Positions 3,325-55,860 of a DNA stretch of 64,000 bases are shown in pieces. Origin of the DNA: Lytechinus pictus (Eukaryota); NCBI RefSeq assembly GCF_037042905.1, contig NC_087258.1, forward strand, positions 27,032,001 to 27,096,000. Direction: 5' to 3'. Below the pieces are notes generated by a model that worked only from the letters and a program-made list of their open reading frames with translations, was not told where the DNA came from and ran no database searches. A program made the translations under genes and the position numbers. Position 1 is the stretch's first letter. Every line of letters starts with the position of its first letter.

Positions 3325-4686
3325 TTACAGTGATACCTTGATGAAATATAACTTATCAGCACAAGCAAAGGCGAGCATGTCTGGGGAAAGGGAGACCAAA
3401 TAACACCAATAACCTAATCCCATATTAAGTGTATTGAACTCAACTCTTTCCTTCAGGTTTAGACCATCAAGATCATAGAGCCTGATCACCACCTTCCTAT
3501 CCTCAAAATCAACACTCGCTACATACACCCTGTCCTGCTCATCCACGGCAGCATACAGGTCGACATCCTCTGGAGCTTGTAGAGACTCACAAGCATTCCC
3601 ATCCCTGTCATAGACCGTCACCACGCTTGGATTTGCATTACATGAACTCGTGACGATCAAACCCGTCCTGGTAGTAGATGCCTGATCCGCCTTGTGCTTT
3701 GTTTGAACAGTGTGTTTAAGAGTGGATCCTGTCGGATCATAGATATAGACTTGTCTTGTATAGTTAGTAATGATGATTTCATCTGATTGACTTCTGTTAA
3801 GTCTGAAATCATTAGGACCGTCTCTCACGTGGATTGTTGCTTTCTTGGAGCCAAGGGGGGAATACATGTACGCTTCATTAGTATCGTAAATCGATACGCA
3901 TAAAGATCCGTCTTGTTGATAGACAATATCATTATATTTCCCGTCATTGGGTATGTTACTATACTGCTGCTTACCACCATTTGAATCAATGATATCAATA
4001 CCTTGTGCATTCCACCCATATGCGATACCCACACTGTCGTGTGAGTACCGTGTCATTCCCCACATATCTGACCGTAGATCAACACACTGAATGACTTCTA
4101 TCTTGGGATCTGATCCTGCGATGCTCCCGAGGTCAAGACGAGTATCATCTGCTGGTTTGAACCTCTTCTCCTGTGATTTCTTCTTTATGGCTGCCGTAGA
4201 AGAATGATTAGTATAATCTGAGATGCTCCCGAGGTCAAGACGAGTATCATCTGCTGGTTTGAACCTCTTCCCCTTTGCTTTCTTTGAAATTGTTGACGCA
4301 GAAGTGTGATCGGTAGCCTCCTTCAGCATGGCATCTAGTTCCTCACAGAGCAAGATATGAGCAGATAGAGTGTCTGTCTCAAGATGACCCAGTCTGTCAT
4401 TATCTACCAAAGTAATTGAACTACAAATACTCTTGATTATCTGACGATCTTTTGACTTCAAGACGTTGAGGTCGTCATCAAAACTATGCTTTAAAGCATT
4501 GATTTGGACGGTGAGATTTCGAAGATTTTCTTCCAGCTCCTTGGCCTTGATGGTGTAAGCCTGCCTGACATCATCTAGTAGTGTCTGCACTGCAGTGTGT
4601 ACCTCATGACGTTGTATTTCTATGTTTTGAATGTTCTTTTCCAGCTCTGTTTTCTTGTCAGCACATCGTTGGGCAAGGTCTTCCAC
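3325..4686 (-). CDS. TRIM copy A exon 2: coiled coil, 2x34-aa linker repeat and NHL-like beta-propeller (joined to exon 1 at 7405-8037 gives 664 aa)
   Basis: 453-aa open frame. The apparent start is GTG (Val) preceded by a splice acceptor (ttcattccttag|GTGGAA). Heptad-like N-terminus; C-terminal repeats such as IIITNY..QVYIYDPTG, VVTVYDRDG and YAAVDEQDRVYVA resemble NHL/propeller blades. Confidence 0.9.
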   Translation of the reverse strand: MEDLAQRCADKKTELEKNIQNIEIQRHEVHTAVQTLLDDVRQAYTIKAKELEENLRNLTVQINALKHSFDDDLNVLKSKDRQIIKSICSSITLVDNDRLGHLETDTLSAHILLCEELDAMLKEATDHTSASTISKKAKGKRFKPADDTRLDLGSISDYTNHSSTAAIKKKSQEKRFKPADDTRLDLGSIAGSDPKIEVIQCVDLRSDMWGMTRYSHDSVGIAYGWNAQGIDIIDSNGGKQQYSNIPNDGKYNDIVYQQDGSLCVSIYDTNEAYMYSPLGSKKATIHVRDGPNDFRLNRSQSDEIIITNYTRQVYIYDPTGSTLKHTVQTKHKADQASTTRTGLIVTSSCNANPSVVTVYDRDGNACESLQAPEDVDLYAAVDEQDRVYVASVDFEDRKVVIRLYDLDGLNLKERVEFNTLNMGLGYWCYLVSLSPDMLAFACADKLYFIKVSL

Positions 4687-6047
4687 CTAAGGAATGAAAG
4701 TTTGTATAGTACAAACAACGGTTTAGATCTGCAAATATTCCTTAAATGTGAAAATAACAAACTGTTTAAAAAGATAACTACTGCAGAATGACACGCGATA
4801 ATCAGTAAAATAAACCCATATTTACACAATTTCATGTCATTGTTACAATAACTTTAAAGAAAATCGTGGCTGACATTCAACAAAAATAATGGGAAGAAAT
4901 GCTTATATGCAACAGTATTAACAATATTGATGATGGTACGTTGCATAAGCTTATTATCAGATACAATACATTTTTGATTGATTGATAACGAATTTATTTC
5001 ATTTCAAAATTTCAACAAAATTACAAAGTAGAGCGAATTGTAATATAACGTAATGAAATGAAATGAAAACCTTCTGAAAAGCACAGCTCGTTAAAGGTTT
5101 TTTTTTTACATATTGATACAAGATACAAAGTTCAAAGTCTATCTAATACACAGATAATCATATCTTTCTTGTAAAAATTACATATAAATCCTTGTAAATT
5201 GTTAGTTTTTTTATCATATTCTCCCATAGCAAGTAAAAGATAAACAAGGCTGAATAATATTACAAGAAAGTGAAAAAGGACACACGAAACAAAGCATTAC
5301 AAGAACAGGAAATACATGTAATAGAACGGTACAAGAACAAGGCACGGCAAAAATCATTAAAGAGCAAGACATAACAAAAACTATACAAGAACTGACAAAA
5401 TATAACCAAAAACAATAAAACAAAGGACAAAAAAAGAGTAAAAGAAAACAAACAAAAAAAGCTGCACGGGTAGATAGAATGAAGAGACAGAGACGGGAAA
5501 TGAAGTGAAATAAAGAGAGGGAGAACGGGGAGAGTGGGGAAGGGAGAATAAGAAAGAATAGAAAATCCTTAAAATATCCTACTGATACTAAATTTTAGGG
5601 GTGTTATGATTATTAAAGGGATTTTGTTTTATGCCATATGAATTGTAGCCTTATTTCGTAAAGCTTGTGAAAGTGAGTTCCATGGTTTCATGCCAGAAGA
5701 TATGATAAGTTTGTTTGGAAATAATGTCATTGATCAAGATAAATGGAAAATTCCAGCAGATCTATCGTAGAGTAGTGATGAATATTTACAATTCTTGTAA
5801 CATTTTAGTAAATTTTTAATATATTTATCAATATTATAGTATCCAAATGTTGTGATTTGTTCAATCTTTTAATTTCGTCATTATTATATTCATCATCATC
5901 ACTTATTGTTGTTATTACCCTTATATTTCAAATCAACATTTCTATCTTTAATACCACTAGGTATATGGTATACAATTTGTTTTTGTTTGATGGAAGTAAA
6001 ATAAACAAATTTGAATTTAATTGAATTGAATTTGAATAGGTATACTA

Positions 6048-7057
6048 AAGTTCACGTCCACCCCAGAAAAATTATGATTGAATAAATAAATCAAACTAGC
6101 ATCTGAAAATTTCATCAAAATTGGATGTAATATGAATTGAATTGAATTTATTGGAACTTCACTGGCAATTGCCAATATTTTGTTCGAAAAATAGAAAATG
6201 ATACAATACAAATATACAATGCAAGGAATATAAGCAAATAAACAAAAACAAAATAGTATTTTGTAAAAAAAAAAGAGAAACAACTTATATATACAGATAT
6301 ACACAATAAACATAGGAATCATTTGGATAGATAATTGACAATGGATATAGAGACTGATATCCAAGAAAAGATAAAGAAACATAAAGAAAGTGAGAGAGGA
6401 GAGGGAAATAAAGAGGAAAGAAGTTCGAAAATGGAGAGAGCGGGAAAGAGAGGAAGAATGAGAAGAATGGCATTACATGTAAACTCATTGTGTAAAAATA
6501 TTGCGAATATATTACTTTAAAGTGTTTGCCGGTTGATATTTGTGTACTCAGAAATCCCCCCTAATAGCAATTATGTTTTGGATAAAAGAACAAAACAATT
6601 TAATCAAGGCTTCCGTATAATTAAAACAAATATGAGAAAGCTGTGACATTTTAAAATTTCGCGTATTTTTCACAAAACAGTGATATGCACAACTCAGTGA
6701 CATGCAAATGAGACAGTCGATGATGTCCCTCACTATTTATTTCGTTTTTTTTTATTGTTTTAATTATACAATATTTATAGTTTATAGATTTGACAATAAG
6801 GACCAACTTGACTGAACTATAAAGTATTAAAACAATACTTATTCTACATGACCGGGAGGTGTATGATGTATCAGTCTCCTCGTTTGCATACCGACCAGGA
6901 TGTGCATAAAAACTGTTTTGTGATATTAACCGAAATCTAAAATGTCATAACTTTCTTATTTATATCCGATTTCGATGAAATTTTTAGTGTTATGCTTGTC
7001 ATTTGGATGTTACTCTTTTTATTCAAATCAACTTTATGTTGGGGTAGACTTGTCCTT
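6048..7057. mobile_element. TTAA/Kolobok-like MITE in the TRIM intron (in all copies; carries an extra ~500-bp insert in A and E)
   Basis: Termini aagttcacgtccacccc / ggggtagacttgtcctt; homologs near 18960-19445, 40407-40650, 42957-43526 and 57221-58260. Confidence 0.7.
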
Positions 7058-7404
7058 AAATATTGTTAATGTTATTTACATACATGATCATTCCTATTCT
7101 TCTCAAAGTCATTTTCAGCTCTCTTCATAATCATCATCACCATCAATATTCAATTTCAGTGTTCTTCTATACAGTTGAGGTTCCATGGGAGCCAAACTTC
7201 GGGTGCCGCCCTGTTCCCCCTCCCCTCCCCCTCCCCCCCCCCCCTCCTCCTCCCCCCCCTCCTCCCATCCCCCTACCCCTCACCGATCGAGGCGTGTTTT
7301 TTTCTCATCATTTTTGTTTTATCATTGGTATTGATAGTATTTTCAGTGTCAACATTCAATTCAGAATTCTTTTCCACACTATGATCTGAAATAAATAAAA
7401 TTAC

Positions 7405-12071: not shown

Positions 12072-12205
12072 NNNNNNNNNNNNNNNNNNNNNNNNNNNNN
12101 NNNNNNNNNNNNNNNNNNNNNNNNNNNNNNNNNNNNNNNNNNNNNNNNNNNNNNNNNNNNNNNNNNNNNNNNNNNNNNNNNNNNNNNNNNNNNNNNNNNN
12201 NNNNN
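12072..12205. other. Assembly gap
   Basis: Run of N. Confidence 1.
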
Positions 12206-16400: not shown

Positions 16401-16418
16401 TGGTTGAGATAATCTGGA

Positions 16419-17783
16419 TTACAGTGATACCTTGATGAAATATAAGTTATTACCACAAGCAAAGGCGAGCATGTCTGGGGAGAGGGAAACCAAGTAACAC
16501 CACCACCAACCCAATGCCATATCTAGTGCTTTGAACTCAACTCTTTCCTTCAAGTTCAGACCATCAAGATCATAGAGTCTGATCACCACCTTACTATTCC
16601 ACCTATCAACACTCGCTACATACACCCTGTCCTGCTCATCCACGGCAGCATACATGAAGACACCCCCTGGAGCTTGTAGAGACTCACCAGCATTCCCATC
16701 CCTGTCATAGACCGTCACCACGCGTGGATCGTCCCAACATGAACTCGTGACGATCAAACCCGTCCTGGTGGTAGATGCCTGATCCGCCTTGTGATTTGTT
16801 TGAACAGCGTGTTTAAGAGTGGATCCTGTCGGGTCATAGATATATACTTGGTTTCCATAGTTAGTAATGATGATTTCATCTGATGGACTTCTGTTAAGTC
16901 TGAGATTATTAGTATTGTCTCCCACCTGGATTGTTGCCTTCCTGGAGCCAAGGGGGGAGTATATATAGGCTTCTTTAGTATGGGATAGCGATACGCATAA
17001 AGATCCATCTTGTTGATAGACAAGATCATTATATTTCACGTCATTGGGTATGTTACTATACTGCTGCTTACCACCATTTGAATCAATGATATCAATACCT
17101 CGTGCATACCACCCATATACGGTACCCACACTGTCGTGTGAGTACCGTGTCATTCCGGACATATATGACCGTAGATTTACACACTGAATGACTTCTATCT
17201 TGGGGTCTGATCCTGAGATGCTCCCGAGGTCAAGACGAGTATCATCTGCTGGCTTGAACCTCTTCTCCTGTGATTTCTTCTTTATGGCTGCCGTAGAAGA
17301 ATGATCAGTATATTCTGAGATGCTCCCGAGGTCAAGACGAGTATCATCTGCTGGCTTGAATCTCTTCCCCTTTGCTTTCTTCGTAATTGCTGACGCAGAA
17401 GTTTGATCGGTAGCCTCCTTCAGCATGGCATCTAGTTCCTCACAGAGCAAGATATGAGCAGATAGAGTGTCTGTCTCAAGATGACCCAGTATAGCATTAT
17501 CTACCAAAGTAATTGAACTACAAATACTCTTGATCCTCTGACGATCTCTTGACTTCAAGACGTTGAGGTCGTCATCAAAACTTCGCTTTATAGCATTGAT
17601 TTGCTCCGTGAGATTTCGAACATTTTCTTCCAGCTCTTTGGCCTTGATGGTGTAGGCTTGCTTGACATCATCTAGTAGTGTCTGCACTGCAGTGTGTACC
17701 TCATGACGTTGTATTTCTATGTTCTGAATGTTCTTTTCCAGCTCTGTTTTCTTGTCAGCACAGCGTTGGGCAAGGTCTTCCAC
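16419..17783 (-). CDS. TRIM copy B exon 2 (coiled coil and NHL-like propeller); full protein 666 aa
   Basis: 454-aa open frame paralogous to copy A exon 2, with the same ttag|GTG acceptor. Confidence 0.9.
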   Translation of the reverse strand: MEDLAQRCADKKTELEKNIQNIEIQRHEVHTAVQTLLDDVKQAYTIKAKELEENVRNLTEQINAIKRSFDDDLNVLKSRDRQRIKSICSSITLVDNAILGHLETDTLSAHILLCEELDAMLKEATDQTSASAITKKAKGKRFKPADDTRLDLGSISEYTDHSSTAAIKKKSQEKRFKPADDTRLDLGSISGSDPKIEVIQCVNLRSYMSGMTRYSHDSVGTVYGWYARGIDIIDSNGGKQQYSNIPNDVKYNDLVYQQDGSLCVSLSHTKEAYIYSPLGSRKATIQVGDNTNNLRLNRSPSDEIIITNYGNQVYIYDPTGSTLKHAVQTNHKADQASTTRTGLIVTSSCWDDPRVVTVYDRDGNAGESLQAPGGVFMYAAVDEQDRVYVASVDRWNSKVVIRLYDLDGLNLKERVEFKALDMALGWWWCYLVSLSPDMLAFACGNNLYFIKVSL

Positions 17784-19791: not shown

Positions 19792-20427
19792 CTTCCGTCG
19801 CAACTCTTGTTCAAAGTCAACCTGGTTCTTGATTTCATGAGCTTTATGACCAACAAGTACACACTTGTGACAGACTTGGACCTTACAATCCTCACAATAC
19901 ATATCCTTGTTCTCAAGTTTGTGGATGGAACACTTCTCGAATAAATGACCAATGCTGACCTTCCCTTCGATGACATCATCCATGGAGACAATCTCATGAT
20001 CTCCAAAGACTACTACAAGCTGTTGATGAGAATGCAGGCACTTATCACACATGTATAAAGTACATGTTCTGCATAATGACACGGCGTCTTTCTGAGACTT
20101 GCAAGCGGTACATTTCTGGCACATCTCAAGGACAGCATTCATCCCTCCACGCTTGGCGTGGTAATCGTCTACGCATCCGTTGATGGAGACATTGAGGCGG
20201 AGATCATCGACACGGTAGGCAGACAACTTGGTGATCTCCCTGCAGAGAGGACAGACCATGTGATCAAGGTCCTGGTGGGTAAGATCGTATTTCTTGAGGC
20301 ATCGCCTACAAAAAGTGTGTCCACATGAAGTTAAGATTGTCGCCTCGACAAATATATCAAGGCATAGCGGACATATCAGGTTCGGTGAAGAGCTTGAAGC
20401 TTTCTCTGATTCCCGCTTCTCAGCCAT
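19792..20427 (-). CDS. TRIM copy B exon 1 (RING-Bbox1-Bbox2)
   Basis: ATG at 20427, intact Zn ligands, donor AAG|gtaatt, 636 nt; intron 17784-19791. Confidence 0.92.
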
Positions 20428-27443: not shown

Positions 27444-27498
27444 GAGTTACCTCGAAATTTTCGGCTGCTAACTGCAACCTTCGTCAGCGATGTGACCC
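27444..27498 (-). ncRNA. Minimal type I hammerhead ribozyme in the PLE 3' pLTR, overlapping the ORF stop
   Basis: Minus strand: gggucacaucg-CUGACGA-aGGUUGC aguua GCAGCC-GAA-AAUU-U|cgagguaacuc. Stem I has 9 of 11 pairs, stem II has 6 bp, and stem III is the palindromic AAUU typical of PLE minimal hammerheads. Confidence 0.8.
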
Positions 27499-29939
27499 GA
27501 TTTGACCTTAGTGACGTAATGATCGATGATCGGGTCGTAGACATTCGGAAGCTTGTATCGCCCCCCGTCTCTGTTGAGAGAAGGTCTGAACGCCCGGATG
27601 TAGATGGCCTCTTTCACACCTCTCTCGAAGTACCGCGGCTCCCTGTCCAGCACTTGTACTTTGTTGATGTCAACACAATGGCCAGGGGATTCGATGTGGA
27701 TGTGCTGAGATACCTCGGAGGAAGTGGAGCTAGGGCGTCGGTGTTCAAGGAATCTTGTCCTAAGGGAACGTTCTGTTTCTCCTATATAAGATTCCTGACA
27801 TAGACCCTTAGTCGTCTGTCCTTGACAAGGAATCAAATAAATAGGACCGGTGATATCCTTCTTCTCTGTCTTATCTTTCGGCGCAACCAAGTACTGTCTA
27901 AGGGTCCTTGTTGGTTTGTAACACACCCTAATGCCAAATTGACTGAAATTCCTACGAAGGGCTTCCGATAATCCTTTAACGTACGGAAGTACAATCTGTC
28001 CTTTGGGTGGCTTGGGGTTGTCCTTTCTAGGCGGAGACTTTCCTTTAGCTGAGTTATCGATCTTGTTGAAGACCCAACTAGGATAGCCGCACTTGGAGAG
28101 AGCCTGTTTAACGTGTGCTTTTTCCTCAGAAACGGTGACTGGGTCTGTGATAACCGCTTCCGCTCGATGGAAAAGAGTCTTGATCACACCAAGCTTATGT
28201 TCAAGTGGGTGATTAGAGGAAAAGTTCAGGTATTGGTCGGTGTGCGTAGGTTTACGGTAAACTTTGATATCCAAGTTGCCGTCTGGTTGAATAACCGTCA
28301 AAGTGTCAAGAAATGCCAGCGACCGTCCTTCCTCACCTTCAGTGGTGAATTGAATGTCCGGATCAATCAAGTTCAGATGATCAGTAAATTCCTGCGAGAA
28401 TTCTTTCTTGAGTTTAGTGTGTGTATCATCAACATATCGAAACCACCATATTGGAGGATGAGGTGCTGACTCAAGAGCTAATTGTTCAAAATGTTCCATG
28501 TACAGATTACAAACAATGGGGGAAATTGGCGATCCCATCGCTGCTCCATGGATCTGCTGATAATATATGCCATTGTGAACAAAATAAGTACATCGCAGGC
28601 AAACATCCAACAGTTTCACAATGTGGTCCACTGATAGGCGAGTCCTATCTTTCCAAGTGTTCACGCTCTGAAGTTTGGATTGGATAATCTTCAGGGCCTT
28701 GTCAATAGGAACTGAAGTGAAAAGAGCTGTCACGTCATATGATCTCAGTTCCTCGTCTTCCTCAACACGCGCATTCTTAATACATTCAGCAAAAGATTGA
28801 GAATCAGTTACATGGTGACAAGTCTGACCAACTAAAGGTGACAAAATGTAGGCAAGATGCTTGGCACAGTTATAAGTAATTGATCCAATACTACTTACAA
28901 TCGGTCGAAGTGGAATGTTCGGTTTATGGATTTTAGGGAGACCATAAAACTTAGGAGGGGTATCTGTAGTTGGGTATAACCTGCGATATTCGTCTCTGTT
29001 GATACCACCGTCTCTCTCTATTTCTTGTAGAGCACTAACAAGTTCCTTCTTATACTTGCTTGTAGGATCCTTCGAACCAAGTTTCTTGTAAGTGTTGGTA
29101 TCATTCAAAAGAGATTCACATTTGCTATTATAATCACAAGTGTTCAGAATAACCACAGTCCTACCTTTGTCTGCTGGTAAAACTCTGATGTTCTTATCTT
29201 TCTTCAAATCGTTCAAAGCCTCAGTTTCTTCTTTGTTGAGATTGGGCTCGAGTTTTCTCGGTCGGCTCAGTAATCCAACGACTTTAGATCTCAACTCAGT
29301 AGCACTGCGTTCGTTCAACTTACGGCATGCGGTTTCCGTACTAGTGATGATGTCAACAACGGGAACCTCTGTAGGCGCTACGGAGAAATTAAGCCCTTTC
29401 ACTAACACCGACAATTCAGAATCTCTCAACAGACGATCAGAGCAGTTTTTCACCCATTTACCGATGCAATCTGACGCGATGTTTGTGTTAAAATTCCGAG
29501 AATTTTCCGCGTTTTTCTTCTCCAACAACCGAGCGAATTTGTTTTGCTGTCGTGTTTTGGAAGCCTCGTGTTCTTTGACCTGTGACCTCTCCACTCGCGT
29601 TTTCACTTCCGATATGACGTCACACGGCAATTCATTCGAAATGGCGGCATTCAAACGTTCCTTTTCACTGTTGAGAAAGTTGATCTTTCCAACTATTTGT
29701 CCAACACGTACATTTAATAAAGCTCTCTCTGCTTTGCGTAAGATGTTATCCGCTTTACCCCCCTTGACAGCGCTCGACAGTTGTAGACTCACAGGTGTGA
29801 CCCTGTTGTGTTTACAATGCAAGCTGAACCGAAGGTGGTTGCGATAACGAGCGATCTTCTGCCCAGTTCTTTCCAAATGTCTAATTCGATACAAGCAATC
29901 CTTGCCAAAATCATTACGAATACGATTATGAAAGTTCAT
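27468..29939 (-). CDS. Penelope-like element ORF: reverse transcriptase plus GIY-YIG endonuclease (823 aa, uninterrupted)
   Basis: PLE motifs KGLNF, ADKG..VV, FYGLPKIHK..PLRPIVS, SYDVTALFTSVP, GAAMGSPISP, RYVDDT, VYRKPTHTDQYL; C-terminal PIYLIPC...YIGETERSLRTRFLEH and KEAIYI..LNRD. Confidence 0.95.
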   Translation of the reverse strand: MNFHNRIRNDFGKDCLYRIRHLERTGQKIARYRNHLRFSLHCKHNRVTPVSLQLSSAVKGGKADNILRKAERALLNVRVGQIVGKINFLNSEKERLNAAISNELPCDVISEVKTRVERSQVKEHEASKTRQQNKFARLLEKKNAENSRNFNTNIASDCIGKWVKNCSDRLLRDSELSVLVKGLNFSVAPTEVPVVDIITSTETACRKLNERSATELRSKVVGLLSRPRKLEPNLNKEETEALNDLKKDKNIRVLPADKGRTVVILNTCDYNSKCESLLNDTNTYKKLGSKDPTSKYKKELVSALQEIERDGGINRDEYRRLYPTTDTPPKFYGLPKIHKPNIPLRPIVSSIGSITYNCAKHLAYILSPLVGQTCHHVTDSQSFAECIKNARVEEDEELRSYDVTALFTSVPIDKALKIIQSKLQSVNTWKDRTRLSVDHIVKLLDVCLRCTYFVHNGIYYQQIHGAAMGSPISPIVCNLYMEHFEQLALESAPHPPIWWFRYVDDTHTKLKKEFSQEFTDHLNLIDPDIQFTTEGEEGRSLAFLDTLTVIQPDGNLDIKVYRKPTHTDQYLNFSSNHPLEHKLGVIKTLFHRAEAVITDPVTVSEEKAHVKQALSKCGYPSWVFNKIDNSAKGKSPPRKDNPKPPKGQIVLPYVKGLSEALRRNFSQFGIRVCYKPTRTLRQYLVAPKDKTEKKDITGPIYLIPCQGQTTKGLCQESYIGETERSLRTRFLEHRRPSSTSSEVSQHIHIESPGHCVDINKVQVLDREPRYFERGVKEAIYIRAFRPSLNRDGGRYKLPNVYDPIIDHYVTKVKSGHIADEGCS

Positions 29940-31543: not shown

Positions 31544-33407
31544 GTTAGTGCCTTACATTAGTTAGTGCCTTACATAAAGGCGGTGCAAATGAACCTTCTA
31601 ATTTCAGGCCAATTTCGATATTACCTATTTTATCTAAGCTACTAGAACGTATAGTGTTTGATCAATTGTATGAATACTTGAACAGGAACAATTTGATTAA
31701 TGACTACCAATCTGGCTTTCGGCCATTACATTCTACAGCAACGGCATTACTCAATACAACAGATGAATGGCTAAAAAGCTTTGATGAAGGCAAATTAGTA
31801 TGCTCTGTCATGCTAGACTTAAAAAAAGCATTCGACACGGTTGATTTCGAATTGCTTATCCAAAAATTAAAGCAATATGGAATTGGGGATCACTCAATTG
31901 AATGGTTTACAAGTTACTTATATGGAAGATGCCAGAAAACGACAGTGCATGGTATATCATCTGATTTATTACCCATTAAATCTGGAATCCCTCAAGGGTC
32001 CATTTTAGGGCCGCTTCTTTTCATTTTACATATTAATGATCTACCTTTAGTTCTTAGAAATTGCAAAATAAGTATGTATGCAGATGACACTATTTTATAT
32101 TATGCAAGTAACAACTACTCTGATCTAGAAAACAAAATCAATGAAGATTTGCAAAATGTGAAACGATGGCTTGATCACAATAAGCTTAGTTTGAATATCA
32201 AAAAAACTGAATATATTGTCCTAGGAACTAGAAATCGACTGAAACTATTCAAATATGAATCGCTAAATATTCACATTGATGGAACCCCCCTAACAAGAGT
32301 TACCCAGTGTAAACATTTAGGAGTAATTTTAGATGAAAATCTGTCATGGGGAAAACACATTCAAAATGTGCAGAAGAAATGTAGTAGCGGTTTGTTTATG
32401 CTAAAATCGATACGAAGTATGGTTGACAAGGATACAATGATTCTAGTCTATAACGCCCTGATTTCATCTCATTTGTCATATTGTGATATAGTATGGGGAA
32501 ATTGCGGCAAATGTTTAAAAGATAACCTCCAAAAGATTCAAAATCGGGCAGCTCGCGTTATCAATAATACCGCCTGGGATTCATCCGGAAACGAAAATCT
32601 AAATGAACTAAATTGGGATACACTTGAAAAGAAAAGGAATGAAAGTGTTGCAATAATGATGTTTAACATACTCAATAACTTAGCCCCTTCATATCTAATC
32701 AATAGATTTTCCCTTAAAGAAAGATCACATAACACAAGAAGTGGGAATCTCAATTTGGAAATAATGCAAATAAAGTCTGAATCTGCAAAGCGCATGTTTA
32801 TGTACAGAGGCGCCAGTATGTGGAACTCATTACCCACTAATATTCAAGCGGCACAAACGAAACACAATTTCAAAACAGGTCTAAAGAGATTATCTGTGTG
32901 ATATGGATCACAATGACTATTTTTCTGGTTAATTTTCTGTCCCCAGTACATGTATTATTTTCCAACCATTTCATATGTTTTGCTTTTATATGGCATGAGT
33001 ATTAACTATATAAGTTTTATAATTAATTTCAGTGCATGTTTAGTTATGTTTAGTTATCATAAATTTTCCAGACATTTTTGTATGTTTAGTTTTTATCATT
33101 GATAAATCATGACTTATATTCATTTTCTTGTACTTGTTTGTCCATTATAGAAACATGTATTTACTTTGACATTTTACTTTACCATGTACACATTTAATAT
33201 TACCATGTATGCACCGCTTTGTTCCAATTTACCGATAGATATTTCATGTTGTAAATTATTGATGTTTTTGAAAACGGTATATAATTTCTTCGTCTTTTTC
33301 TTACTATCATTATTATTATTTTTCTTCTTCTTCTTTTCTTCTTCTGTTATCTTCTCTGTTGTCTTTTCTCTTTTTCGTCTCCCTCTCACTTTTCCCTTCT
33401 TCTTCTT

Positions 33408-36332: not shown

Positions 36333-37697
36333 TTACAGTGATACCTTGATGAAATATAACTTATCGAAACATGCAAAGGCGAGCATGTATGGGGAGAGGG
36401 AGACCAAGTAACACCACTCCCAACCCAATGTCATATCAAGTGCTTTGAACTCAACTCTTTCCTTCAGGTTCAGACCATCAAGATCATAGAGCCTGATCAC
36501 CACCTTCCTATTCTGCCAATCAACACTCGCTACATACACCCTGTCCTGCTCATCCACGGCAGCATACAGGTAGACATCCTTTGGAGTTTGTAGAGACTCA
36601 CCAGCATTCCCATCCCTGCCATAGACCGTCACCACGCTTGGATTGCCCCAACATGAACTCGTGACGATCAAACCCGTCCTGGTGGTAGATGCCTGATCCG
36701 CCTTGTGTTTTGTTTGAACAGTGTGTTTAAGAGTGGATCCTGTCGGGTCATAGATATATACTTGGTTTCCATAGTTAGTAATGATGATTTCATCTGATGG
36801 ACTTCTGTTAAGTCTGAGATTATTAGTATTGTCTCCCACATGGATTGTTGCCTTCCTGGAGCCAAGGGGGGAGTATATGTAGGCTTCTTTAGTACCGTGA
36901 AGCGATACGCATAAAGATCCATCTTGTTGACAGACAAGATCATAATATTCCCCGTCATTGGGTATGTTACTATACTGCTGCTTACCACCATTTGAATCAA
37001 TGATTTCAATACCATGTGCAAACCTCCCATATACGATACCCACACTGTTATGTGAGTACCGTGTCATTCCCAACATAATTGACCGTAGATTAACGCACTG
37101 AATGACTTCCATCTTGGGGTCTGATCCTGAGATGCTCCCGAGGTCAAGACGAGTATCATTTGCTGGCTTGAACCTCTTCTCCTGTGATTTCTTCTTTATG
37201 GCTGCCGTAGATGGATGATCTGTATATTCTGAGATGCTCCCGAGGTCAAGACGAGTATCATCTGCTGGTTTGAACCTCTTCCCCTTTGCTTTCTTTGTAA
37301 TTGCTGACGCAGAAGTGTGATCGGTAGCCTCCTTCAGCATGGCTTCTAGTTCCTCACAGAGCAAGATATGAGCAGATAGAGTGTCTGTCTCAAGATGACC
37401 CAGTCTGTCATTATCTACCAAAGTAATTGAACTACAAATACTCTTGATCCTCTGACGATCTTTTGACTTCAAGACATTGAGGTCGTCATCAAAACTATGC
37501 TTTAAGGCATTTATTTGGTCGTTGAGATTTCGAAGATTTTCTTCCAGCTCCTCGGCCTTGATGGTGTAGGCTTGCTTGACATCATCTAGTAGTGTCTGCA
37601 CTGCAGTGTGTACCTCATTACGTTGTATTTCTATGTTTTGAATGTTCTTTTCCAGCTCTGTTTTCTTGTCAGCAGAGCGTTGGTCAAGGTCTTCCAC
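36333..37697 (-). CDS. TRIM exon 2 copy C: intact frame but no adjacent exon 1 of its own; could be spliced to exon 1 at 44107-44742
   Basis: 454-aa open frame with intact acceptor. Its upstream intron sequence (37698-40650) ends by fusing to the middle of another exon 2 instead of reaching an exon 1. Confidence 0.7.
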   Translation of the reverse strand: MEDLDQRSADKKTELEKNIQNIEIQRNEVHTAVQTLLDDVKQAYTIKAEELEENLRNLNDQINALKHSFDDDLNVLKSKDRQRIKSICSSITLVDNDRLGHLETDTLSAHILLCEELEAMLKEATDHTSASAITKKAKGKRFKPADDTRLDLGSISEYTDHPSTAAIKKKSQEKRFKPANDTRLDLGSISGSDPKMEVIQCVNLRSIMLGMTRYSHNSVGIVYGRFAHGIEIIDSNGGKQQYSNIPNDGEYYDLVCQQDGSLCVSLHGTKEAYIYSPLGSRKATIHVGDNTNNLRLNRSPSDEIIITNYGNQVYIYDPTGSTLKHTVQTKHKADQASTTRTGLIVTSSCWGNPSVVTVYGRDGNAGESLQTPKDVYLYAAVDEQDRVYVASVDWQNRKVVIRLYDLDGLNLKERVEFKALDMTLGWEWCYLVSLSPYMLAFACFDKLYFIKVSL

Positions 37698-37988
37698 CTA
37701 AGGAATGAAAGTTTGAAAAGTAAAAACAATGATTTAGATCTGCAAATATTCCTCTAATTTAAAAATAACAAACTATTTAAAAAGATAACTACTGCAGAAT
37801 GACACGCGATAATCAGTAAAAGAAACCCCATATTTACACAATTTCATGTCATTGTTACAATAACTTTAAAGAAAATCGTGGCTGACATTGAACAAAATAA
37901 TAGGAAGAAATGCATTATATGCAACAATATTAACAATATTGATGATGGTACGTTAAATAAGCTTATTATCAGATACAATACATTTTTG

Positions 37989-38330
37989 GATGTTGTTTGA
38001 AGGTTTGCATGGTGGTATGTACAATCGCTGATGTGGCTTACGGTACACCATGTGAAGTGTTATAGAAACAGTGGATAGAAGAAGAGAAGGAATGGATAGG
38101 CGAGAAAGTCGAGATTTGAGAGCAGAGTATTCTTTCTTGAAAGTAGTCCTGAAAAGGATTGTAAACCAGGAAAGATTGATGAGTAGTAGAGCTAGTGAGG
38201 AGATGCTGGCTTGAGCCGGCGAGTAGAGATGATGAGTAGTAGAGAGACTCGACGTTTCGGGCAGGTTGACTGTCCGTCTTCTGAAGACGGACAGTCAACC
38301 TGCCCGAAACGTCGATAACGACGATAACGA
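37989..38330. mobile_element. Remnant pLTR of a second Penelope-like family in the copy C intron, with terminal fold-back and hammerhead core
   Basis: Absent from paralogous introns. 33-bp inverted repeat at 38249-38315 containing CUGAAGA-cGGACAG ucaac CUGCCC-GAA-ACGU-C (plus strand 38281-38313). Confidence 0.7.
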
Positions 38331-38699
38331 ATAACGAATTTATTACATTTCAAAATTTCAACACAATTACAAAGGAGAGCGAATTGTAATATAACGTAAT
38401 GAAATGAAATGGAAACCTTCTGAAAAGCACAGCTCGTTAATGAAGGTTTTTTTTTCAATAAATAAGACATATTGATACAAGATACAAAGTTCAAAATCTA
38501 TCTAATACACAAATCATCATATCTTTCTAGTAGAAATTAAACATAAATCCTTGTTAATTATTATTTTTTTATCATATTCTCCTATAGCAAGTAAAATATA
38601 AACAAGGCTGAATAATCATAATAATATTACAAGAAAGTGAAAAAGGACACACGAAACAAAACATTACAAGAACAGGAAATACAGGTAAAAGAACGGTAC

Positions 38700-39760
38700 G
38701 TCTCGGCCCCTTATTGTTTATGTACACAAGTAGACTTCTTTACGGTATAACAAGAGAGTTTCCAAGTATCACTTCCCACTGCTATGCAGACGACACACAA
38801 CTATACTTATCTTTCTCCCCAAATGCACCACGAGATGATAAATCATTAGAAGATTGTGTGGCATATATTAAAACCTGGATGCTTCAAAATAAGTTAATGT
38901 TGAATGATAGAAAAACTGATTTTTTAGTCATTGGTACCCCACGTCCGGTTTCTAAATTTGGGGGCTATAGCTTAACTGTTGGCTTTTCGGTTATACATAT
39001 AACTCCATCAGATAAAGCCAGAAACCTTGGTGTAGTCTTTGATACCCACTTAAGAATGGAATCAAAAATCAACAATGTTTGTAAATCCGCTTATTTTATG
39101 ATCTATAACTTGAGACGTATCCGTAATTTTTTTTATCAAGACACCATGAAAACTATTGTTCTCGCTTGTATCACAAGTAAATTGGATTATTGTAATAGTG
39201 TTCTCTATGAATTACCCGATTCTCAAATAAGCAAACTGCAGAGAGTGCAAAACACATGTGCACGTTTGATATGTCGTCTTCCCAAATTCTCTCCTGTCAC
39301 CCCATTATTGAGAGAATTACACTGGCTACCTGTCCGGCAAAGAATCACATAGATCCTAATGATAGTCTTTAAAGGTCTTAATGGTCAGGCCCCAAGTTAT
39401 ATCTCAGATCTCTTGAAATTGAAATCCCGATCTCATGACCATGCATCACCTATACGTAGCTCACAAGATACACTCACACTGCAAGTACCCCCACACAAGA
39501 CTAAAGCAACACTAGGAGGTCATTTCTGATAGGTCATTTCTGATGTAGGTCATAGGTCATTTCTGATGTCAGCCCCACGACTATGGAACAAACTTCCCCT
39601 CAACATTAGGAATTCAACAAATTTACATAAGTTCAAGTTAAAATTAAAGACCTATATATTCCAATTGTATGTACAGCACCTAGGAAGCTCCTGCAGCGCA
39701 ATAGAATATATATAAATAGTTGTTGCGCTATATAAATGCATATTATTATATTATTATTAT
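38700..39760 (+). mobile_element. 5'-truncated L2-type LINE in the copy C intron (antisense to TRIM)
   Basis: YADDTQLYLSF, RNLGVVFD, LDYCNSVL, LHWLPVRQRI then stop; (tat)n tail; inserted at gaacggtac|aagaac, which is uninterrupted in paralogous introns. Confidence 0.88.
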
Positions 39761-40650
39761 TACAAGAACAAAGCATGGCAAAGACTATACAAGACCAAGA
39801 CATAAAAGAAACTATACAAGAACTGACAGAATTTAACAAAAACAGTAAAACAAATGACAAAAAAAAAAACGAGTAAGAGAAAGCAAACAAAAACAAAGCT
39901 GCACGGGTAGATAGAATGAAGAGACAGAGAGGGGAAAAGAAGTGAAATAAAGGGAGGGTGAAGGGAGAGAGTGGGGGAGAAAAAGAAAGAATAGAAGATC
40001 CTCAAAATATCCTAATAATACTGAATAATAGGGGTGTTGTGATTATCAATGGGATTTTGTTTTATGCTACGAATTGTAGGCTTATTTTGTAAAGCTTGTG
40101 AAAGTGAGTTCCAAGGTTTCATGCCAGAAGATATGAATTGTTTGTTTGTATATAATGTCCTTATTCTAGGTAAATGGAAAAGTCCAGCAGCTCATGTAGG
40201 GTGGTGATGAATGTTAAATTTTTCTTGAAAACAAAGAGTACAAGTTTTAATATATTTATCAATACGATTTCCAAGTGTTTTGATTTGTTTTTCTATCTTT
40301 TAATTTCGTAAATATTATTATCTTTATTATCATCACTTATTGTGTTGATTACCGTTACATTTCAAATTAACATTTCTATATTTAATACCATTACATGTAG
40401 GTATATTAACGGTCACATCCATCCCAAAAAATTATGATTGATTTGAATAAATAGAGAAATTCAAACTAGTATCACACTGAAAATTTTATCAAAATCGGAT
40501 GTAAAATGAGAAAGTTATGACATTTTAAAATTTCGCGTATTTTTCACAAAACAGTGATATGCACAACTCAGTGACATGCAAATGAGAGAGTCGATGATGT
40601 CCCTCACTCGCTATTTCTTTTGTTGTTTTTTATTGTTTGAATTGTTCAAT

Positions 40651-41676
40651 ACCCGTCCTGGTGGTAGATGCCTGATCCGCCTTGTGTTTTGTTTGAACAG
40701 TGTGTTTAAGAGTGGATCCTGTCGGGTCATAGATATATACTTGGTTTCCATAGTTAGTAATGATGATTTCATCTGATGGACTTCTGTTAAGTCTGAGATT
40801 ATTAGTATTGTCTCCCACATGGATTGTTGCCTTCCTGGAGCCAAGGGGGGAGTATATGTAGGCTTCTTTAGTACCGTGAAGCGATACGCATAAAGATCCA
40901 TCTTGTTGACAGACAAGATCATAATATTCCCTGTCATTGGGTATGTTACTATACTGCTGCTTACTACCATTTGAATCAATGATATCAATACCTTGTGCAT
41001 ACCACCCATATACGATACCCACACTGTTATGTGAGTGCCGTGTCATTCCCAACATATATGACCGTAGATTAACGCACTGAATGACTTCCATCTTGGGATC
41101 TGATCCTGAGATGCTCCCGAGGTCAAGACGAGTATCATTTGCTGGCTTGAACCTCTTCTCCTGTGATTTCTTCTTTATGGCTGCCGTAGATGGATGATCA
41201 GTATATTATGCGATGCTCCCGAGGTCGAGACGAGTATTATCAGCTGGCTTGAACCTCTTCCCCTTTGATTTCTTCGTAATTGCTGACGCAGAAGTGTGAT
41301 CGGTAGCCTCCTTCAGCATATCATCTAGTTCCTCACAGAGCAAGATATGAGCAGATAGAGTGTCTGTCTCAAGATGACCTAGTCTGTCATTATCTACCAA
41401 TGTTATTGAACTACAAATACTCTTGATCCTCTGACGATCTTTTGACTTCAAGACGTTGAGGTCGTCATCAAAACTATGCTTTAAGGCATTTATTTGGTCG
41501 GTGAGATTTCGAAGATTTTCTTCCAGCTCCTTGGCCTTGATGGTGTAAGCCTGCCTGACATCATCTAGTAGTGTCTGCACTGCAGTGTGTACCTCATGAC
41601 GTTGTATTTCTATGTTCTGAATGTTCTTTTCCAGCTCTGTTTTCTTGTCAGCACAGCGCTGGGCAAGGTCTTCCAC
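40651..41676 (-). pseudogene. TRIM exon 2 copy D: premature stop (GAA>TAA at 41206-41208) and 3' truncation at about 40651
   Basis: Reads ...DLGSIA*YTDHPST versus DLGSISEYTDHPST in copy C. Homology ends after ASTTRTG, where intron sequence (attgttcaat) is joined. Confidence 0.85.
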
Positions 41677-43737
41677 CTAAGGAATGAAAGTTTGAAAAGT
41701 AAAAACAACGATTTAGATCTGCAAATATTCCTTAACTGTGAAAATATAAATTATTTAAAAAGATAACTACTGCAGACTAACATGCGATAATCAGTAAAAG
41801 AACCCCATACTTACATAATGTCATGTCATTGTTACAATAACTATAAAGAAAATAGTTTATGACATTAAAAAAAAAATTAGGAAGAAATTATATACAACAA
41901 TATTGATGATGGCGCGTTGAATAAGCTAATTATCATATTCAATATATTTTTATTGATTGATTTGATTGATTGATAACGGATTTATTTCATTTTAAGATTT
42001 CATCAAAATTTAGAGCGAATTGTAATACATTGAATTAAAATTAAATGGAAACATGAAAAGCAAGCTCGTTAATGAAGGTTTCCTTCAATAAATAAGACAT
42101 ATTGATACAAGATTTTAAAAAAATCCTAATACATATAATATACAAACATTTTTGTATAAATTAGATATAAATCCTTAAAAATTATTAGTTTATTATCATA
42201 TTCTCCCGAGTAAAGACAAACAAGGCTGAATATTACAAGATATGACAAAAAAATGAAAGGGACACACGAAATAAAACGTTACGAAAACAGCAAATAATAG
42301 AACGGTACAAGAACAAGGCATGACAAAAAAACTATACAAGAGCAATACATGACAAAAACTTTACAACAGACAAAATATAACAAAAACCATAAAAAAGGAC
42401 AAAAAACGAGAAAAGAAAGGAAAAAAAGGTGCACAGATAGATAAAATGAAAAGAGATAGAGACGGGAAAAGAAGTGAAATAAAGGGAGGAAAGAGAGAGA
42501 GAGAGAGGGTGGGAAAGAATAAGAAAGAATAGAAGATCCTCAAATTTGTTAAAATATCCTAAGAATACTAAATAATAGGGGTGTTGTGATTATCAATGGG
42601 ATTTTGTTTTATGCTATGAATTGTAGGCTTATTTTGTAAAGCTTGTGAAAGTGAGTTCCAAGGTTTCATGCCAGAAGATATGAATTGTTTGTTTATATAT
42701 AATGTCCTTACTCTAGGTAAATGGAAAAGTCCAGCAGATCATGTAGGGTGGTTATGAATGTTAAATTTTTTTTTTAAACAAAGAGTACAAGTTTTAATAT
42801 ATTTATCAATACGATTTCCAAGTGTTTTGATTTGTTTTTCTATCTTTTAATTTCGTCAATATTATTATCTTTATTATCATCACTTATTGTGTTGATTACC
42901 CTTACATTTCAAATTAACATTTCTATATTTAATACCATTACATGTAGGTATATTAACGGTCACGTCCATCCCCCAAAAATATGATTGATTAGAATAAATA
43001 GAGAAATTCAAACTAGTATCACACTGAAAATTTCATCAAAATCGGATGTAAAATGAGAAAGTTATGACATTTTAAAATTTCGCGTATTTTTCACAAAACA
43101 GTGATATGCACAACTCAGTGACATGCAAATGAGAGAGTCGATGATGTCCCTCACTCGCTATTTCTTTTGTTGTTTTTTATTGTTTGAATTGTACAATATT
43201 TCATATCTTACAGATTTGACAATAAGGATCCCCTGACTGAGCCAAATAGTATTAAAATAATGCTTATTCTACATGGCCGGGAGGAATTATACAAGATAAA
43301 AAAAAAAAAAGTGAACATGGCGAATGGATGATGTATCGGTCTCCTCATTTGCATACCGACCAGGATATGCATAATAACTGTTTTGTGAAATTAACCGAAA
43401 TTTAAAATGTCAGAACTTTCTTATTTATATCCGATTTCGATGAGATTTCCATTGTTATGCTTGTTGGATTTTTCTCGTTTTGTTCAAATCAACTTGATAG
43501 GTCCATGGTTGGGGGAACTTGTCCTTAAATATTGTTTATGTTATTTACGTACAGTCATGATCACTCCTATTCCTCTCAAAGCCATTTTCAGCTCTTTTCG
43601 TTATCATCATCAATATTCAATTTTAGTGTTCTTTTATAGGTGAGGATCCATGGGAGTCAAACTTCAGGTGCCGCCTTGACCCCCATCCTTCCTCCCCCTC
43701 CTCCTCCACTCCCCTTTCCCTACCCCTCACCGAGATG

Positions 43738-43992
43738 CACTCTTAAAAAATATTAGGTAAAAATGCTCCACGAGGGTAATTATATGTCCAACCAACATTG
43801 CGCATTTCTTTTGAGGATTTTTATTTATACAGTGTAATTAAAAATTGTGCCCATTCTTAAGTAATTGCTGCTTATTTTTTCAACCTTACTGGACAATATG
43901 CTTCCCGCATTGGGTAAAGTACTGCCCCAAATTGGTTGGAAACATACTTACCATCGTGCTGGTTAAAACCTTACCCAATATTTGTTTACAGT
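43738..43992. mobile_element. Small CACT-type MITE in the copy D intron
   Basis: cactcttaaaaaatattaggtaa ... ttacccaatatttgtttacagt; absent from the A, B and E introns. Confidence 0.6.
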
Positions 43993-44106
43993 TTGTTTAT
44001 TCTTATCATTTATTTTTTTCATCATCGACATCAATATTATTATCAGTGTCAATATTCAATTCAGAGTTCTTTTCCACACTATGATCTATTAAATTAATAA
44101 AATTAC

Positions 44107-44742
44107 CTTCCGTCGCAACTCCTGTTCAAAGTCAACCTGGTTCTTGATTTCATGAGCTTTATGACCAACAAGTACACACTTGTGACAGACGTGGACCTTA
44201 CAATCCTCACAAAACATATCCTTGTTCTCTGGTTTGTGGACGGAGCACTTCTCGAATAAATCACCAATGCTGACCTTTCCTTCGATGACATCATCCATGG
44301 AGACAATCTCATGACCGTCAAACAACGTGGTAAGATGTTGATGGCAATGTAAGCACTCATCACACATATAACAATTACATGTTCTGCAGAATGACACGGC
44401 GTCTTTCTGAGACTTGCAAGCGGTGCATTTCTGGCACATCCCGAGGACAGCATTCATCCCTCCACACTTGGCGTGGTAATCGTCTACGCATCCGTTGATG
44501 GAGATATTGAGGCGGAGATCATCGACACGGTTGGGGGACAACTTGATGATCTCCCTGCAGAGAGGACAGACCATGTGATCAAGGTCCTGGTGGGTTAGAT
44601 CGTATTTATTGAGGCATCGCCTACAAAATGTGTGTCCACATGAAGTCAGGATTGTCGCCTCGACAAATATATCTAGACATAATGGACATATCAGGTTCGG
44701 TGAAGAGCTTGAAGCTTTCTCTGATTCACGCTTCTCAGCCAT
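44107..44742 (-). CDS. TRIM copy D exon 1 (RING-Bbox1-Bbox2)
   Basis: Intact ATG, Zn ligands and AAG|gtaatt donor; 636 nt. Confidence 0.88.
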
Positions 44743-47824: not shown

Positions 47825-47856
<32 letters not shown>

Positions 47857-51021: not shown

Positions 51022-51157
51022 NNNNNNNNNNNNNNNNNNNNNNNNNNNNNNNNNNNNNNNNNNNNNNNNNNNNNNNNNNNNNNNNNNNNNNNNNNNNNNN
51101 NNNNNNNNNNNNNNNNNNNNNNNNNNNNNNNNNNNNNNNNNNNNNNNNNNNNNNNNN
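51022..51157. other. Assembly gap
   Basis: Run of N. Confidence 1.
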
Positions 51158-51299
51158 AGTTAACACTTAGAAAAAAATCATATAAAATCATACATTTATA
51201 ATATACTGAAGATTTTTCCTCATTTAAACATTTAAACGGATCCATTTAATTTAATGACGTTGTAACTGTCGAAAAATATTTCCGCTTGAGTGAGCACCA

Positions 51300-54597: not shown

Positions 54598-55860
54598 TTA
54601 CAGTGATACCTTGATGAAATATAACTTCATCCAACAAGCAAAGGCGAGCATGTCTGGGGAGAGGGAGACCAAGTAACACCAATGCCAACCCAATGTCATA
54701 TTAAGTGCTTTGAACTCAACTTTTTTCTTCAGGTTCAGACCATCAAGATCATAGAGCCTGATCACCACCTTCCTATTCTGCCAATCAACACTCGCTACAT
54801 ACACCCTGTCCTGCTCATCCACGGCAGCATACAGGTGGACATCCTTTGGAGCTTGTAGAGACTCACCAGCATTCCCATCCCTGTCATAGACCGTCACCAC
54901 GCGAGGATCGGCGTGACATGAACTCGTGACGTACAAACCCGTCCTGGTGGTAGATGCCTGATCCGCCTTGTGATTTGTTTGAACAGTGTGTTTAAGAGTG
55001 GATCCTGTCGGGTCATAGATATATACTTGGTTGTCACCGTTAGTAATGATGATTTCATCTGATTGACTTCTGTTAACACTGAGATCATTAGTACCGTCTC
55101 TCACGTGGATTGTTGCTTTCCTGGAGCCAAGGGGGGAGTATATATAGGCTTCTTTAGTATGGTATAGCGATACGCATAAAGATCCGTCTTGTTGATAGAC
55201 AAGATCCTTATATTTCCTGTCATTGGGTATGTTACTATACTGCTGCTTACCACCATTTGAATCAATGATATCAATACAATGTGCAATCCACCCATATACG
55301 ATACCCACACTGTCGTGTGAGTACCGTGTCATTCCGGACATATATGACCGTAGATTTACACACTGAATGACTTTTATCTTGGGGTCTGATCCTGAGATGC
55401 TCCCGAGGTCAAGACGAGTATCATCAGCTGGGTTGAACCTCTTCCCCTTTGATTTCTTCGTAATTGCTGACGCAGAAGTGTGATCGGTAGCCTCCTTCAG
55501 CATATCATCGAGTTCCTCACAGAGCAAGATATGAGCAGATAGAGTGTCTGTCTCAAGATGACCTAGTCTGTCATTATCTACCAATGTTATTGAACTACAA
55601 ATACTCTTGATCCTCTGACGATCTTTTGACTTCAAGACGTTGAGGTCGTCATCAAAACTATGCTTTAAGGCATTTATTTGGTCGGTGAGATTTCGAAGAT
55701 TTTCTTCCAGCTCCTTGGCCTTGATGGTGTAAGCCTGCCTGACATCATCTAGTAGTGTCTGCACTGCAGTGTGTACCTCATGACGTTGTATTTCTATGTT
55801 TTGAATGTTCTTTTCCAGCTCTGTTTTCTTGTCAGCACATCGTTGGGCAAGGTCTTCCAC
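54598..55860 (-). CDS. TRIM copy E exon 2 (single linker repeat); full protein 632 aa
   Basis: 420-aa open frame; lacks one 102-nt linker repeat relative to A/B/C; same acceptor. Confidence 0.9.
   Translation of the reverse strand: MEDLAQRCADKKTELEKNIQNIEIQRHEVHTAVQTLLDDVRQAYTIKAKELEENLRNLTDQINALKHSFDDDLNVLKSKDRQRIKSICSSITLVDNDRLGHLETDTLSAHILLCEELDDMLKEATDHTSASAITKKSKGKRFNPADDTRLDLGSISGSDPKIKVIQCVNLRSYMSGMTRYSHDSVGIVYGWIAHCIDIIDSNGGKQQYSNIPNDRKYKDLVYQQDGSLCVSLYHTKEAYIYSPLGSRKATIHVRDGTNDLSVNRSQSDEIIITNGDNQVYIYDPTGSTLKHTVQTNHKADQASTTRTGLYVTSSCHADPRVVTVYDRDGNAGESLQAPKDVHLYAAVDEQDRVYVASVDWQNRKVVIRLYDLDGLNLKKKVEFKALNMTLGWHWCYLVSLSPDMLAFACWMKLYFIKVSL

Follow-up and report, generated by a model that had tools for sequence, protein, structure and literature searches.

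How do neighbouring paralogs come to share an almost unchanging framework while differing, codon after codon, in a few short segments, and what might such proteins do? The question is raised by a 64,000-nucleotide stretch of Lytechinus pictus DNA (contig NC_087258.1, positions 27,032,001 to 27,096,000; hereafter the window), in which four TRIM genes or exon sets of two exons each are intact and a fifth copy is partial and broken; every one of them lies on the minus strand. Listing of open reading frames (ORFs), translation and tblastn together give four copies of exon 1 and five of exon 2, the latter lettered A to E with D as the broken one. A preliminary description of the array had placed minus-strand ORFs at the exon 2 positions and had read them as nearly identical frameworks interrupted by short periodic patches. 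Alignment of the four intact exon 2 ORFs bears this out, and the motifs and codons quoted there are correct, among them AAT/TGG/TGG/CAC at residue 158 and GCT/GGT/TTC/TGG at residue 251 (copies A/B/C/E).

The predicted proteins run from a RING through B-box 1 and B-box 2 to a predicted coiled coil some 105 residues long, after which come a flexible linker and an NHL-like beta-propeller of six blades. An AlphaFold2 (AF2) model of the gene A propeller, computed with 44 family members, has 24 strands, a predicted local distance difference test score (pLDDT) of 95.4 and a predicted template modelling score (pTM) of 0.92. Variability was followed in 28 intact exon 2 sequences taken from the 30 closest loci, 27 of them non-identical. 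Single alignment columns carry up to nine residue types beside invariant neighbours. When mapped on the string of secondary-structure states (DSSP) of the model, the variable positions form 12 loops, every second loop along the chain and two per blade; the intervening loops are conserved, including the D-x-x-G turns that follow a strand-ending 'YD'. Because the strands of a blade are antiparallel, alternate loops lie on the same side, so that the variable loops share one face. They are the D-A and B-C loops, since the N-terminal strand closes the last blade and 'YD-x-x-G' marks strand C and the C-D turn. By convention the D-A/B-C face would be the top face, the ligand side of NHL and WD40 domains. 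The earlier expectation of about two patches per blade, formed by the loops of one face, fits this arrangement: the patches occupy the odd-numbered loops of the confident six-bladed model, and the even-numbered loops contain no selected sites. Eleven patches had been counted and there are twelve. The twelfth is the D-A loop that leads into blade 4 (model residues 138-142); it shows almost no variation in the four copies of the window and occurs in 18 variants among the 27 paralogs genome-wide.

Each patch is represented by 12-25 distinct motifs among the 27 non-identical paralogs, and the combination of motifs is unique in all 27. Codon changes at two or three bases make up 28% of the differing codons in the variable loops versus 13-16% elsewhere. 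At hypervariable sites V, L, I, M and P are underrepresented, and K, E, D and G are enriched, as are aromatic residues; of the richness in W, Y, F and H that had been noted at first sight, the part concerning W (about 15-fold) and Y (about 2-fold) stands, and H and F are only weakly enriched.

Strong diversifying selection acts on these 12 loops, and purifying selection acts on the RING, the B-boxes, the coiled coil, the propeller strands and the loops of the opposite face. Codon models of the GY94 type (F3x4) were used, with loop and strand classes set by structure and not by variability. The ratio of nonsynonymous to synonymous rates (dN/dS, omega) is 0.07 in the RING, in keeping with the constant RING effector of the preliminary description, 0.29 in the B-boxes, 0.21-0.29 in the coiled coil, 0.38 in the propeller strands and 0.34 in the opposite-face loops (0.34-0.39 across analyses). 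In the variable-face loops it rises to 1.64 among the 28 paralogs and to 2.12 among the four copies of the window, and the omega fitted to this class, 2.04, is above 1 at p = 7e-9. Within the cluster that contains the window, dS is equal in coiled coil, linker and propeller (0.105-0.12), and dN is 0.022 in the coiled coil versus 0.101 in the propeller.

Further tests agree. For the whole propeller, the likelihood-ratio test (LRT) of model M2a against M1a gives 468.7, with an omega of 6.1 at 19.5% of sites. This single-tree result was not accepted as the sole basis, because the segments of the propeller differ in history: in approximately unbiased (AU) tests, the trees of the two-blade segments and of the coiled coil are mutually rejected, with differences in log-likelihood (delta lnL) of 130-450. 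Since the segment trees conflict, the tests were repeated per segment and in a tree-free form. On their own trees, the two-blade segments give LRT values of 97, 112 and 171 and omegas of 5.5-7.8, and the coiled coil and linker, taken as a control on their own tree, give 0.1. With a test resembling fixed effects likelihood (FEL), 23 sites come out as positive in the propeller versus 0 in the coiled coil and linker, and with an empirical-Bayes version the counts are 44 and 2. In a tree-free count over 13 disjoint nearest pairs, pN/pS is 1.50 in the variable-face loops (binomial p = 0.0012) versus 0.46 and 0.50 elsewhere. The site-wise dN/dS above 1 anticipated in the preliminary description is thus found by the whole-propeller, per-segment, FEL-like and tree-free approaches alike.

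The selected sites fall on one face. One of the 23 positive columns falls in a gap of gene A, which leaves 22 sites that can be placed on the model. Depending on where the loop edges are drawn, 16-21 of these lie in variable-face loops and 0 in opposite-face loops; for the 31 sites with at least five residue types the corresponding figures are 22-31 and 0. Fisher p values for this contrast between faces are 1e-5 to 1e-10 (1e-6 to 1e-10 for the 31 sites), for every loop-edge definition.

A second process acts beside selection. L003 pairs with L005 in the coiled coil (99% support) and with L001 and L002 in the propeller (99%). That paralogs exchange segments follows from such tree conflict, which has high bootstrap even in the region without positive selection. 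Within the window, B equals E at patch 1, B equals C at patches 5 and 6, and C equals E at patch 10, and segment exchange, by recombination or gene conversion, re-assorts the loop variants. The family is large. A six-frame search of the genome yields 130 propeller matches, about 60 of them full-length at 65% identity or more and 57 of these without stops, all genome-wide counts being lower bounds. The count proposed at the outset therefore gives at least 60 close paralogs in tandem clusters, which lie on contigs C14 (20.69-21.14 Mb, and 26.85-27.11 Mb, the latter holding the window), C18, C9 and C21. This search and the analysis of loci L011-L030 confirm that the other clusters are part of the one family. 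Two exon 2 copies 11 kb apart in the genome, L024 and L025 (G000:C14:20764050-20764832 and 20775103-20775885), are identical, with zero branch lengths; either they arose by duplication or conversion in the very recent past, or the copy was duplicated in assembly.

The closest database proteins come from L. pictus, L. variegatus and Strongylocentrotus purpuratus and carry automatic names such as 'TRIM71-like', 'TRIM45-like' and similar. Similar arrays are annotated in the independent L. variegatus and S. purpuratus assemblies. Position variability agrees across species, with Spearman coefficients of 0.70 for L. variegatus (44 paralogs) and 0.50 for S. purpuratus (20 paralogs). As the same positions vary in three species, the constant scaffold with its 12 variable loops predates the split of these genera.

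What might such a surface be for? We regard it as probable, at roughly 0.62, that the array belongs to a germline-encoded repertoire of intracellular recognition modules on TRIM E3 ligases, most likely for defence; the immune role and the class of target (viruses, transposons) we infer by analogy. The variable face would be a putative binding surface for ligands that themselves evolve quickly, and each propeller would bring a rapidly changing target to a constant ubiquitin-ligase effector, a predicted E3. The likeliest targets would be components of viruses, of other intracellular pathogens or of transposons. In its fullest form, the proposal describes an undescribed innate arm of echinoids in which at least 60 cytosolic TRIM ligases, with unique 12-loop combinations re-assorted by selection and exchange, would ubiquitinate the products of intracellular pathogens or transposons; we give this fuller version about even chances.

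In Pfam, PF13445 (E 5.5e-9) and PF00097 (E 9e-8) match the RING at residues 19-62, and none of the four exon 1 copies has lost any of the C3HC4 cysteines or the histidine. PF00643 matches a B-box at residues 164-199 (E 4e-6), and a B-box-1-like match, PF25287 at 102-135 (E 4.5e-4), is under Pfam's cutoff. In the AF2 monomer of a full-length homolog, a single unbroken helix at 201-307, read as the coiled coil with moderate confidence, and further helices at 316-350 have a pLDDT of only 60-70, followed by a disordered linker and a confident propeller. The predicted protein of gene A has 664 residues, a polar N-terminus and no hydrophobic window apart from the RING's first zinc knuckle, which is consistent with a cytosolic protein.

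Transcription of the array, which the preliminary description took to be essential, is supported by the assembled contigs of run X1, which cover the exons and the exact exon 1-exon 2 junction. One contig joins position 4686 to position 7405, skipping exactly 2718 nucleotides with GT..AG ends on the minus strand, and depth is 15-44 on the gene A exons and zero in unique intron bins. Run X1 is taken as RNA by presumption, and the exon-only coverage and the GT..AG junction argue for it. The junction contig indicates that the model of gene A is right and that gene A, an allele or a very close paralog is transcribed. No exon junction reads were present in the raw RNA runs X21-X23.

The one experimental link to an immune role is indirect and comes from S. 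purpuratus, where TRIM45-, TRIM71-, TRIM33- and TRIM56-like genes are among the most up-regulated in coelomocytes/phagocytes exposed to ultraviolet B (UVB) (PMC13043383). These are the automatic names borne by homologs of the present family, and one homolog with 61% identity, LOC115921689, is in the differential-expression table of that paper. The UVB response, seen in homologous TRIM-like genes, also lends itself to a different conflict. Long-lived cells might use the family to watch for DNA damage or transposons, or it might serve allorecognition or a germline or reproductive conflict; the variable face would then keep pace with endogenous or selfish partners that evolve fast. Retroelements are scattered throughout the array, one of them a Penelope-like ORF that seems intact, and diversifying selection alone does not name the opponent. 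Transposon defence, however, overlaps with the defence repertoire proposed here, and a role in gamete recognition or allorecognition is unlikely for a cytosolic RING ligase whose N-terminus is polar. A conflict of this other kind is on the whole unlikely.

Several points weigh against the defence reading itself. UVB induction is genotoxic stress in immune cells, not infection or pathogen recognition, and only one of six homolog identifiers was found among the rows listed in the tables of PMC13043383. Expression of gene A is low, with an exon depth of 0.2-1.3x in the three ribo-depleted raw RNA runs, and the spliced contigs of run X1 differ by 2-5% from the window, so that they may derive from an allele or a close paralog. 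The assignment of faces comes from strand order, DSSP alternation and the blade motif of a model, not from measured coordinates. The codon models were home-written rather than those of PAML or HyPhy, and rampant recombination inflates single-tree LRTs, an effect mitigated by the per-segment and tree-free tests.

The propeller's closest structural relatives suggest another possibility, namely that these are ordinary TRIM-NHL post-transcriptional regulators that bind RNA like Brat or LIN-41/TRIM71 and have been subfunctionalised onto different endogenous mRNAs. The best matches among solved structures are six-bladed NHL domains: Brat (1q7f) and Mei-P26 (7nyq) reach a TMq of 0.80 and TRIM2/3 0.73-0.77 (0.77 for TRIM3), with Thin also among them, and seven-bladed WD40 propellers score lower (0.6-0.7). 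RNA-binding NHL domains, including the Brat-RNA complex (4zlr) and TRIM71, are the top structural matches, and aromatic residues and Lys, typical RNA contacts, are enriched at the hypervariable sites. A profile of the family also matches the NHL domain of TRIM2 (E 7e-12), Brat (8e-10), TRIM71 (1e-5) and TRIM3. The same profile matches a repetitive WD40 protein (E 8e-27) and WDR5 (1e-5) as well, and the nearest Atlas clusters bear PF01436. The Pfam NHL model PF01436 itself has no match on the window's proteins at E values up to 0.01 or 1, only two of 44 family members reach as much as E 0.012, and identity to NHL regulators is 12-16%. The name 'NHL-like' therefore seems justified through predicted fold and profile and not through curated Pfam membership, and the NHL-like propeller of the preliminary description stands in the first two respects and falls short in the third. 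The class VII TRIM-NHL proteins (Brat, Mei-P26, TRIM2/3, TRIM32, TRIM71/LIN-41) share the six-bladed fold (TMq 0.73-0.80; profile E 7e-12 to 1e-5), and their NHL domains bind ligand on the top face. They are, however, conserved single-copy developmental regulators, whereas the window's proteins have neither a Pfam NHL match nor a filamin domain. An omega of about 6 at about 20% of sites, in about 60 paralogs and at the same positions in three species, speaks for a continuing arms race and against subfunctions that are settling down; Asp and Glu are enriched along with Lys; and an RNA ligand, for example viral RNA, would also fit a defence repertoire. Ordinary regulators of endogenous mRNAs are accordingly an improbable account of the family.

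Neutral drift of unconstrained surface loops, or hot spots of mutation or gene conversion, can be considered very improbable. Loops do tolerate substitutions, and gene conversion among paralogs is real here. Drift, however, gives an omega near 1, and relaxed constraint was rejected because the class omega is significantly above that value, with the selected class near 6. Loops on the opposite face, at 0.34-0.39, show no such release, and 57 of 60 propeller exons are intact. A mutation hot spot, or conversion from divergent donors, was rejected because it would lift dS too: dS is 0.163 in the variable loops versus 0.161-0.177 in the other structural classes. That collapsed or duplicated haplotypes have been assembled into a merely apparent array is scarcely credible. 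In favour of this are the high heterozygosity of sea urchins, the two assembly gaps within the array and the identity of L024 and L025. Against it, the copies differ by 7-17% across exons, introns and flanks and also in transposon insertions and linker lengths, the gaps are intergenic, and the independent assemblies of the two other species contain similar arrays.

Close parallels to the proposed defence repertoire are known from vertebrates. TRIM5alpha/TRIM22 of primates and the finTRIM/btr families of teleost fish likewise combine a RING-B-box-coiled-coil module with a C-terminal recognition domain, carry selected surface loops, form tandem arrays and act inside the cell (see PMC3137616). 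Their recognition domain is a B30.2 (PRY-SPRY) with three or four variable loops, in contrast to a six-bladed propeller with 12 loops in an echinoderm; no SPRY/PRY (B30.2) match was found by Pfam on the window's proteins, whose C-terminal domain is the propeller. The antiviral function of TRIM5alpha has been demonstrated; that of the urchin family would be a prediction. TRIM56, a vertebrate TRIM of innate immunity, has the same RING-B-box-coiled-coil-propeller order, and its C-terminus is the best match among Swiss-Prot models (TM 0.78-0.79). This likeness is structural, at 14-15% identity, and TRIM56 is single-copy, with no report of a hypervariable face. The literature cited by PMC13043383 credits it with roles against viruses and in the sensing of nucleic acids. 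The fungal HET-E/HET-D/HET-R (HNWD) STAND proteins, of which HET-E-1 ranks eighth among the structural matches, couple WD40 repeats to a NACHT NTPase and a HET death domain in allorecognition, where the present genes encode a TRIM ligase. In HNWD propellers, hypervariability driven by diversifying selection likewise falls on the D-A and B-C loop positions, and recombination shuffles both the repeats and the paralogs.

Among sea urchin genes, the TLR, NLR, SRCR and Sp185/333 families are similarly large, tandemly arranged and equipped with rapidly diversifying recognition surfaces, with different architectures (see Hibino et al. 2006, as cited in PMC3137616). About 140 S. purpuratus genes are annotated as TRIM, with nothing further on such a family (PMC13043383, 2026). 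In the full-text literature searched, which leaves out most subscription journals, no description of a hypervariable TRIM propeller in echinoderms was found. To our knowledge, no TRIM-propeller family has been described among the expanded urchin receptor families. TRIM families with positively selected recognition loops are known; what is new here is the fold used for recognition, how many variable loops there are and how they are arranged, and the lineage.

The features of the window are listed below. The array had been taken to end at 55390; its genes reach 59230, in exon 1 of gene E.

Table. Exons, propellers, hypervariable patches, assembly gaps and an inserted element in the window (positions from the first letter of the window)
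Feature	Position	Strand	Basis
Gene A coding exon 1: RING, B-box 1, B-box 2, 211 codons	7405..8037	-	ORF; Pfam RING families E 5e-9, B-box PF00643 E 4e-6; donor AAG/GTAATT at 7405/7404; spliced contig
Gene A intron, 2718 nt, GT..AG, phase 0, with abundant foldback repeat at about 5979-7100	4687..7404	-	Run X1 contig
Gene A coding exon 2: coiled coil, linker with 34-aa duplication, six-bladed propeller, stop	3325..4686	-	453-aa ORF; preceded by CCTTAG
Gene A propeller, 261 aa, 12 hypervariable loops	3325..4110	-	AF2 model, fold matches, patch mapping
Gene A patches P1-P6	4060-4071, 4003-4014, 3931-3942, 3880-3891, 3802-3825, 3754-3762	-	Patch mapping
Gene A patches P7-P12	3685-3699, 3625-3639, 3556-3570, 3493-3510, 3406-3420, 3352-3360	-	Patch mapping
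Assembly gap, intergenic, gene A exon 1 to gene B exon 2	12072..12205		N run
Gene B coding exon 2, propeller 16419-17204	16419..17783	-	454-aa ORF; acceptor at 17784
Gene B coding exon 1	19792..20427	-	ORF, donor motif; tblastn 88% to gene A exon 1
Copy C intact exon 2, propeller 36333-37118	36333..37697	-	454-aa ORF
LINE reverse-transcriptase fragment in partial intron of copy C	38714-39352	+	RVT_1 match
Copy D broken partial exon 2	40630..41676	-	Translation; tblastn spans residues 1-343 only
Exon 1 upstream of D and C, sole exon 1 available to copy C	44107..44742	-	ORF, donor motif, RING and B-box cysteines intact
Assembly gap, intergenic, exon 1 at 44107-44742 to gene E exon 2	51022..51157		N run
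Gene E coding exon 2, 420 aa, without 34-aa linker repeat, propeller 54598-55383	54598..55860	-	ORF, alignment, acceptor at 55861
Gene E coding exon 1	58595..59230	-	ORF, donor motif

The splice signals are conserved, with an exon 1 donor AAG/GTAATT and an exon 2 acceptor CCTTAG/G, both in phase 0. The locus at 36333-44742 is chimeric and consists of an exon 1, an intron, the broken exon 2 (D), a partial intron with the LINE reverse-transcriptase fragment and the intact exon 2 (C). Copy D carries an in-frame stop within its linker and is truncated past propeller residue 150 or so. No exon 1 of its own was found for copy C by tblastn between it and the D fragment, and copy C is expressible only when splicing skips the broken D exon. 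The arrangement resembles a deletion or unequal exchange among adjacent copies. That the assembly gaps interrupt genes was rejected, since both are intergenic; as they cross no exon or intron of any gene model, the reading frames are unaffected. The spacing between copies is uncertain in the gap regions, and a further copy is possibly hidden there. A sixth exon 2 acceptor motif lies at positions 41-50, and any exon that it served would leave the window at its left end. It is probably an isolated fragment, because no exon 1 was found between it and gene A by tblastn and motif scan.

The basic, disordered linker of gene A (about 4111-4290) contains a tandem duplication of 34 residues with the motif K-R-F-K-P-A-D-D-T-R-L-D-L-G-S-I, which is present at the same place in B and C and absent in E. 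Long (about 454 aa) and short (about 420 aa) forms of exon 2 occur in every genomic cluster.

The spacers between copies are filled by retroelement ORFs. At 27468-29939 on the minus strand, an unbroken ORF of 823 residues combines a weak reverse-transcriptase match with a C-terminal GIY-YIG-like motif and looks like an apparently intact Penelope-like retroelement. A LINE-type reverse-transcriptase ORF (RVT_1 E 5e-30) lies at 31654-32901 on the plus strand, in the long B-C spacer. The abundant repeat in the gene A intron is very deep in the RNA runs and contigs and shows many 'opposite strands' joints from about 6130 to about 6960, which points to a transposable element of foldback or inverted-repeat type that is transcribed at some place in the genome. 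A purine-rich G/A run at 7209-7271, close downstream of the donor in the same intron, was skipped as repeat in read mapping.

Sea urchins are the classic animals without adaptive immunity and with hugely expanded innate receptors (TLR, NLR, SRCR), all of which use LRR or SRCR surfaces. If the proposal is true, an intracellular, ubiquitin-coupled recognition system would be added to urchin immunity, and the strategy of TRIM5/finTRIM, a constant E3 effector joined to a fast-evolving binder, would have arisen independently on another fold. The family would then do on a propeller what TRIM5/finTRIM do on B30.2, and it would correspond in animals to the hypervariable WD40 receptors of fungi. Its propellers would amount to a natural collection of binders, each with 12 loops open to design. 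Since Lytechinus pictus is genetically tractable, the idea is directly testable in the animal itself.

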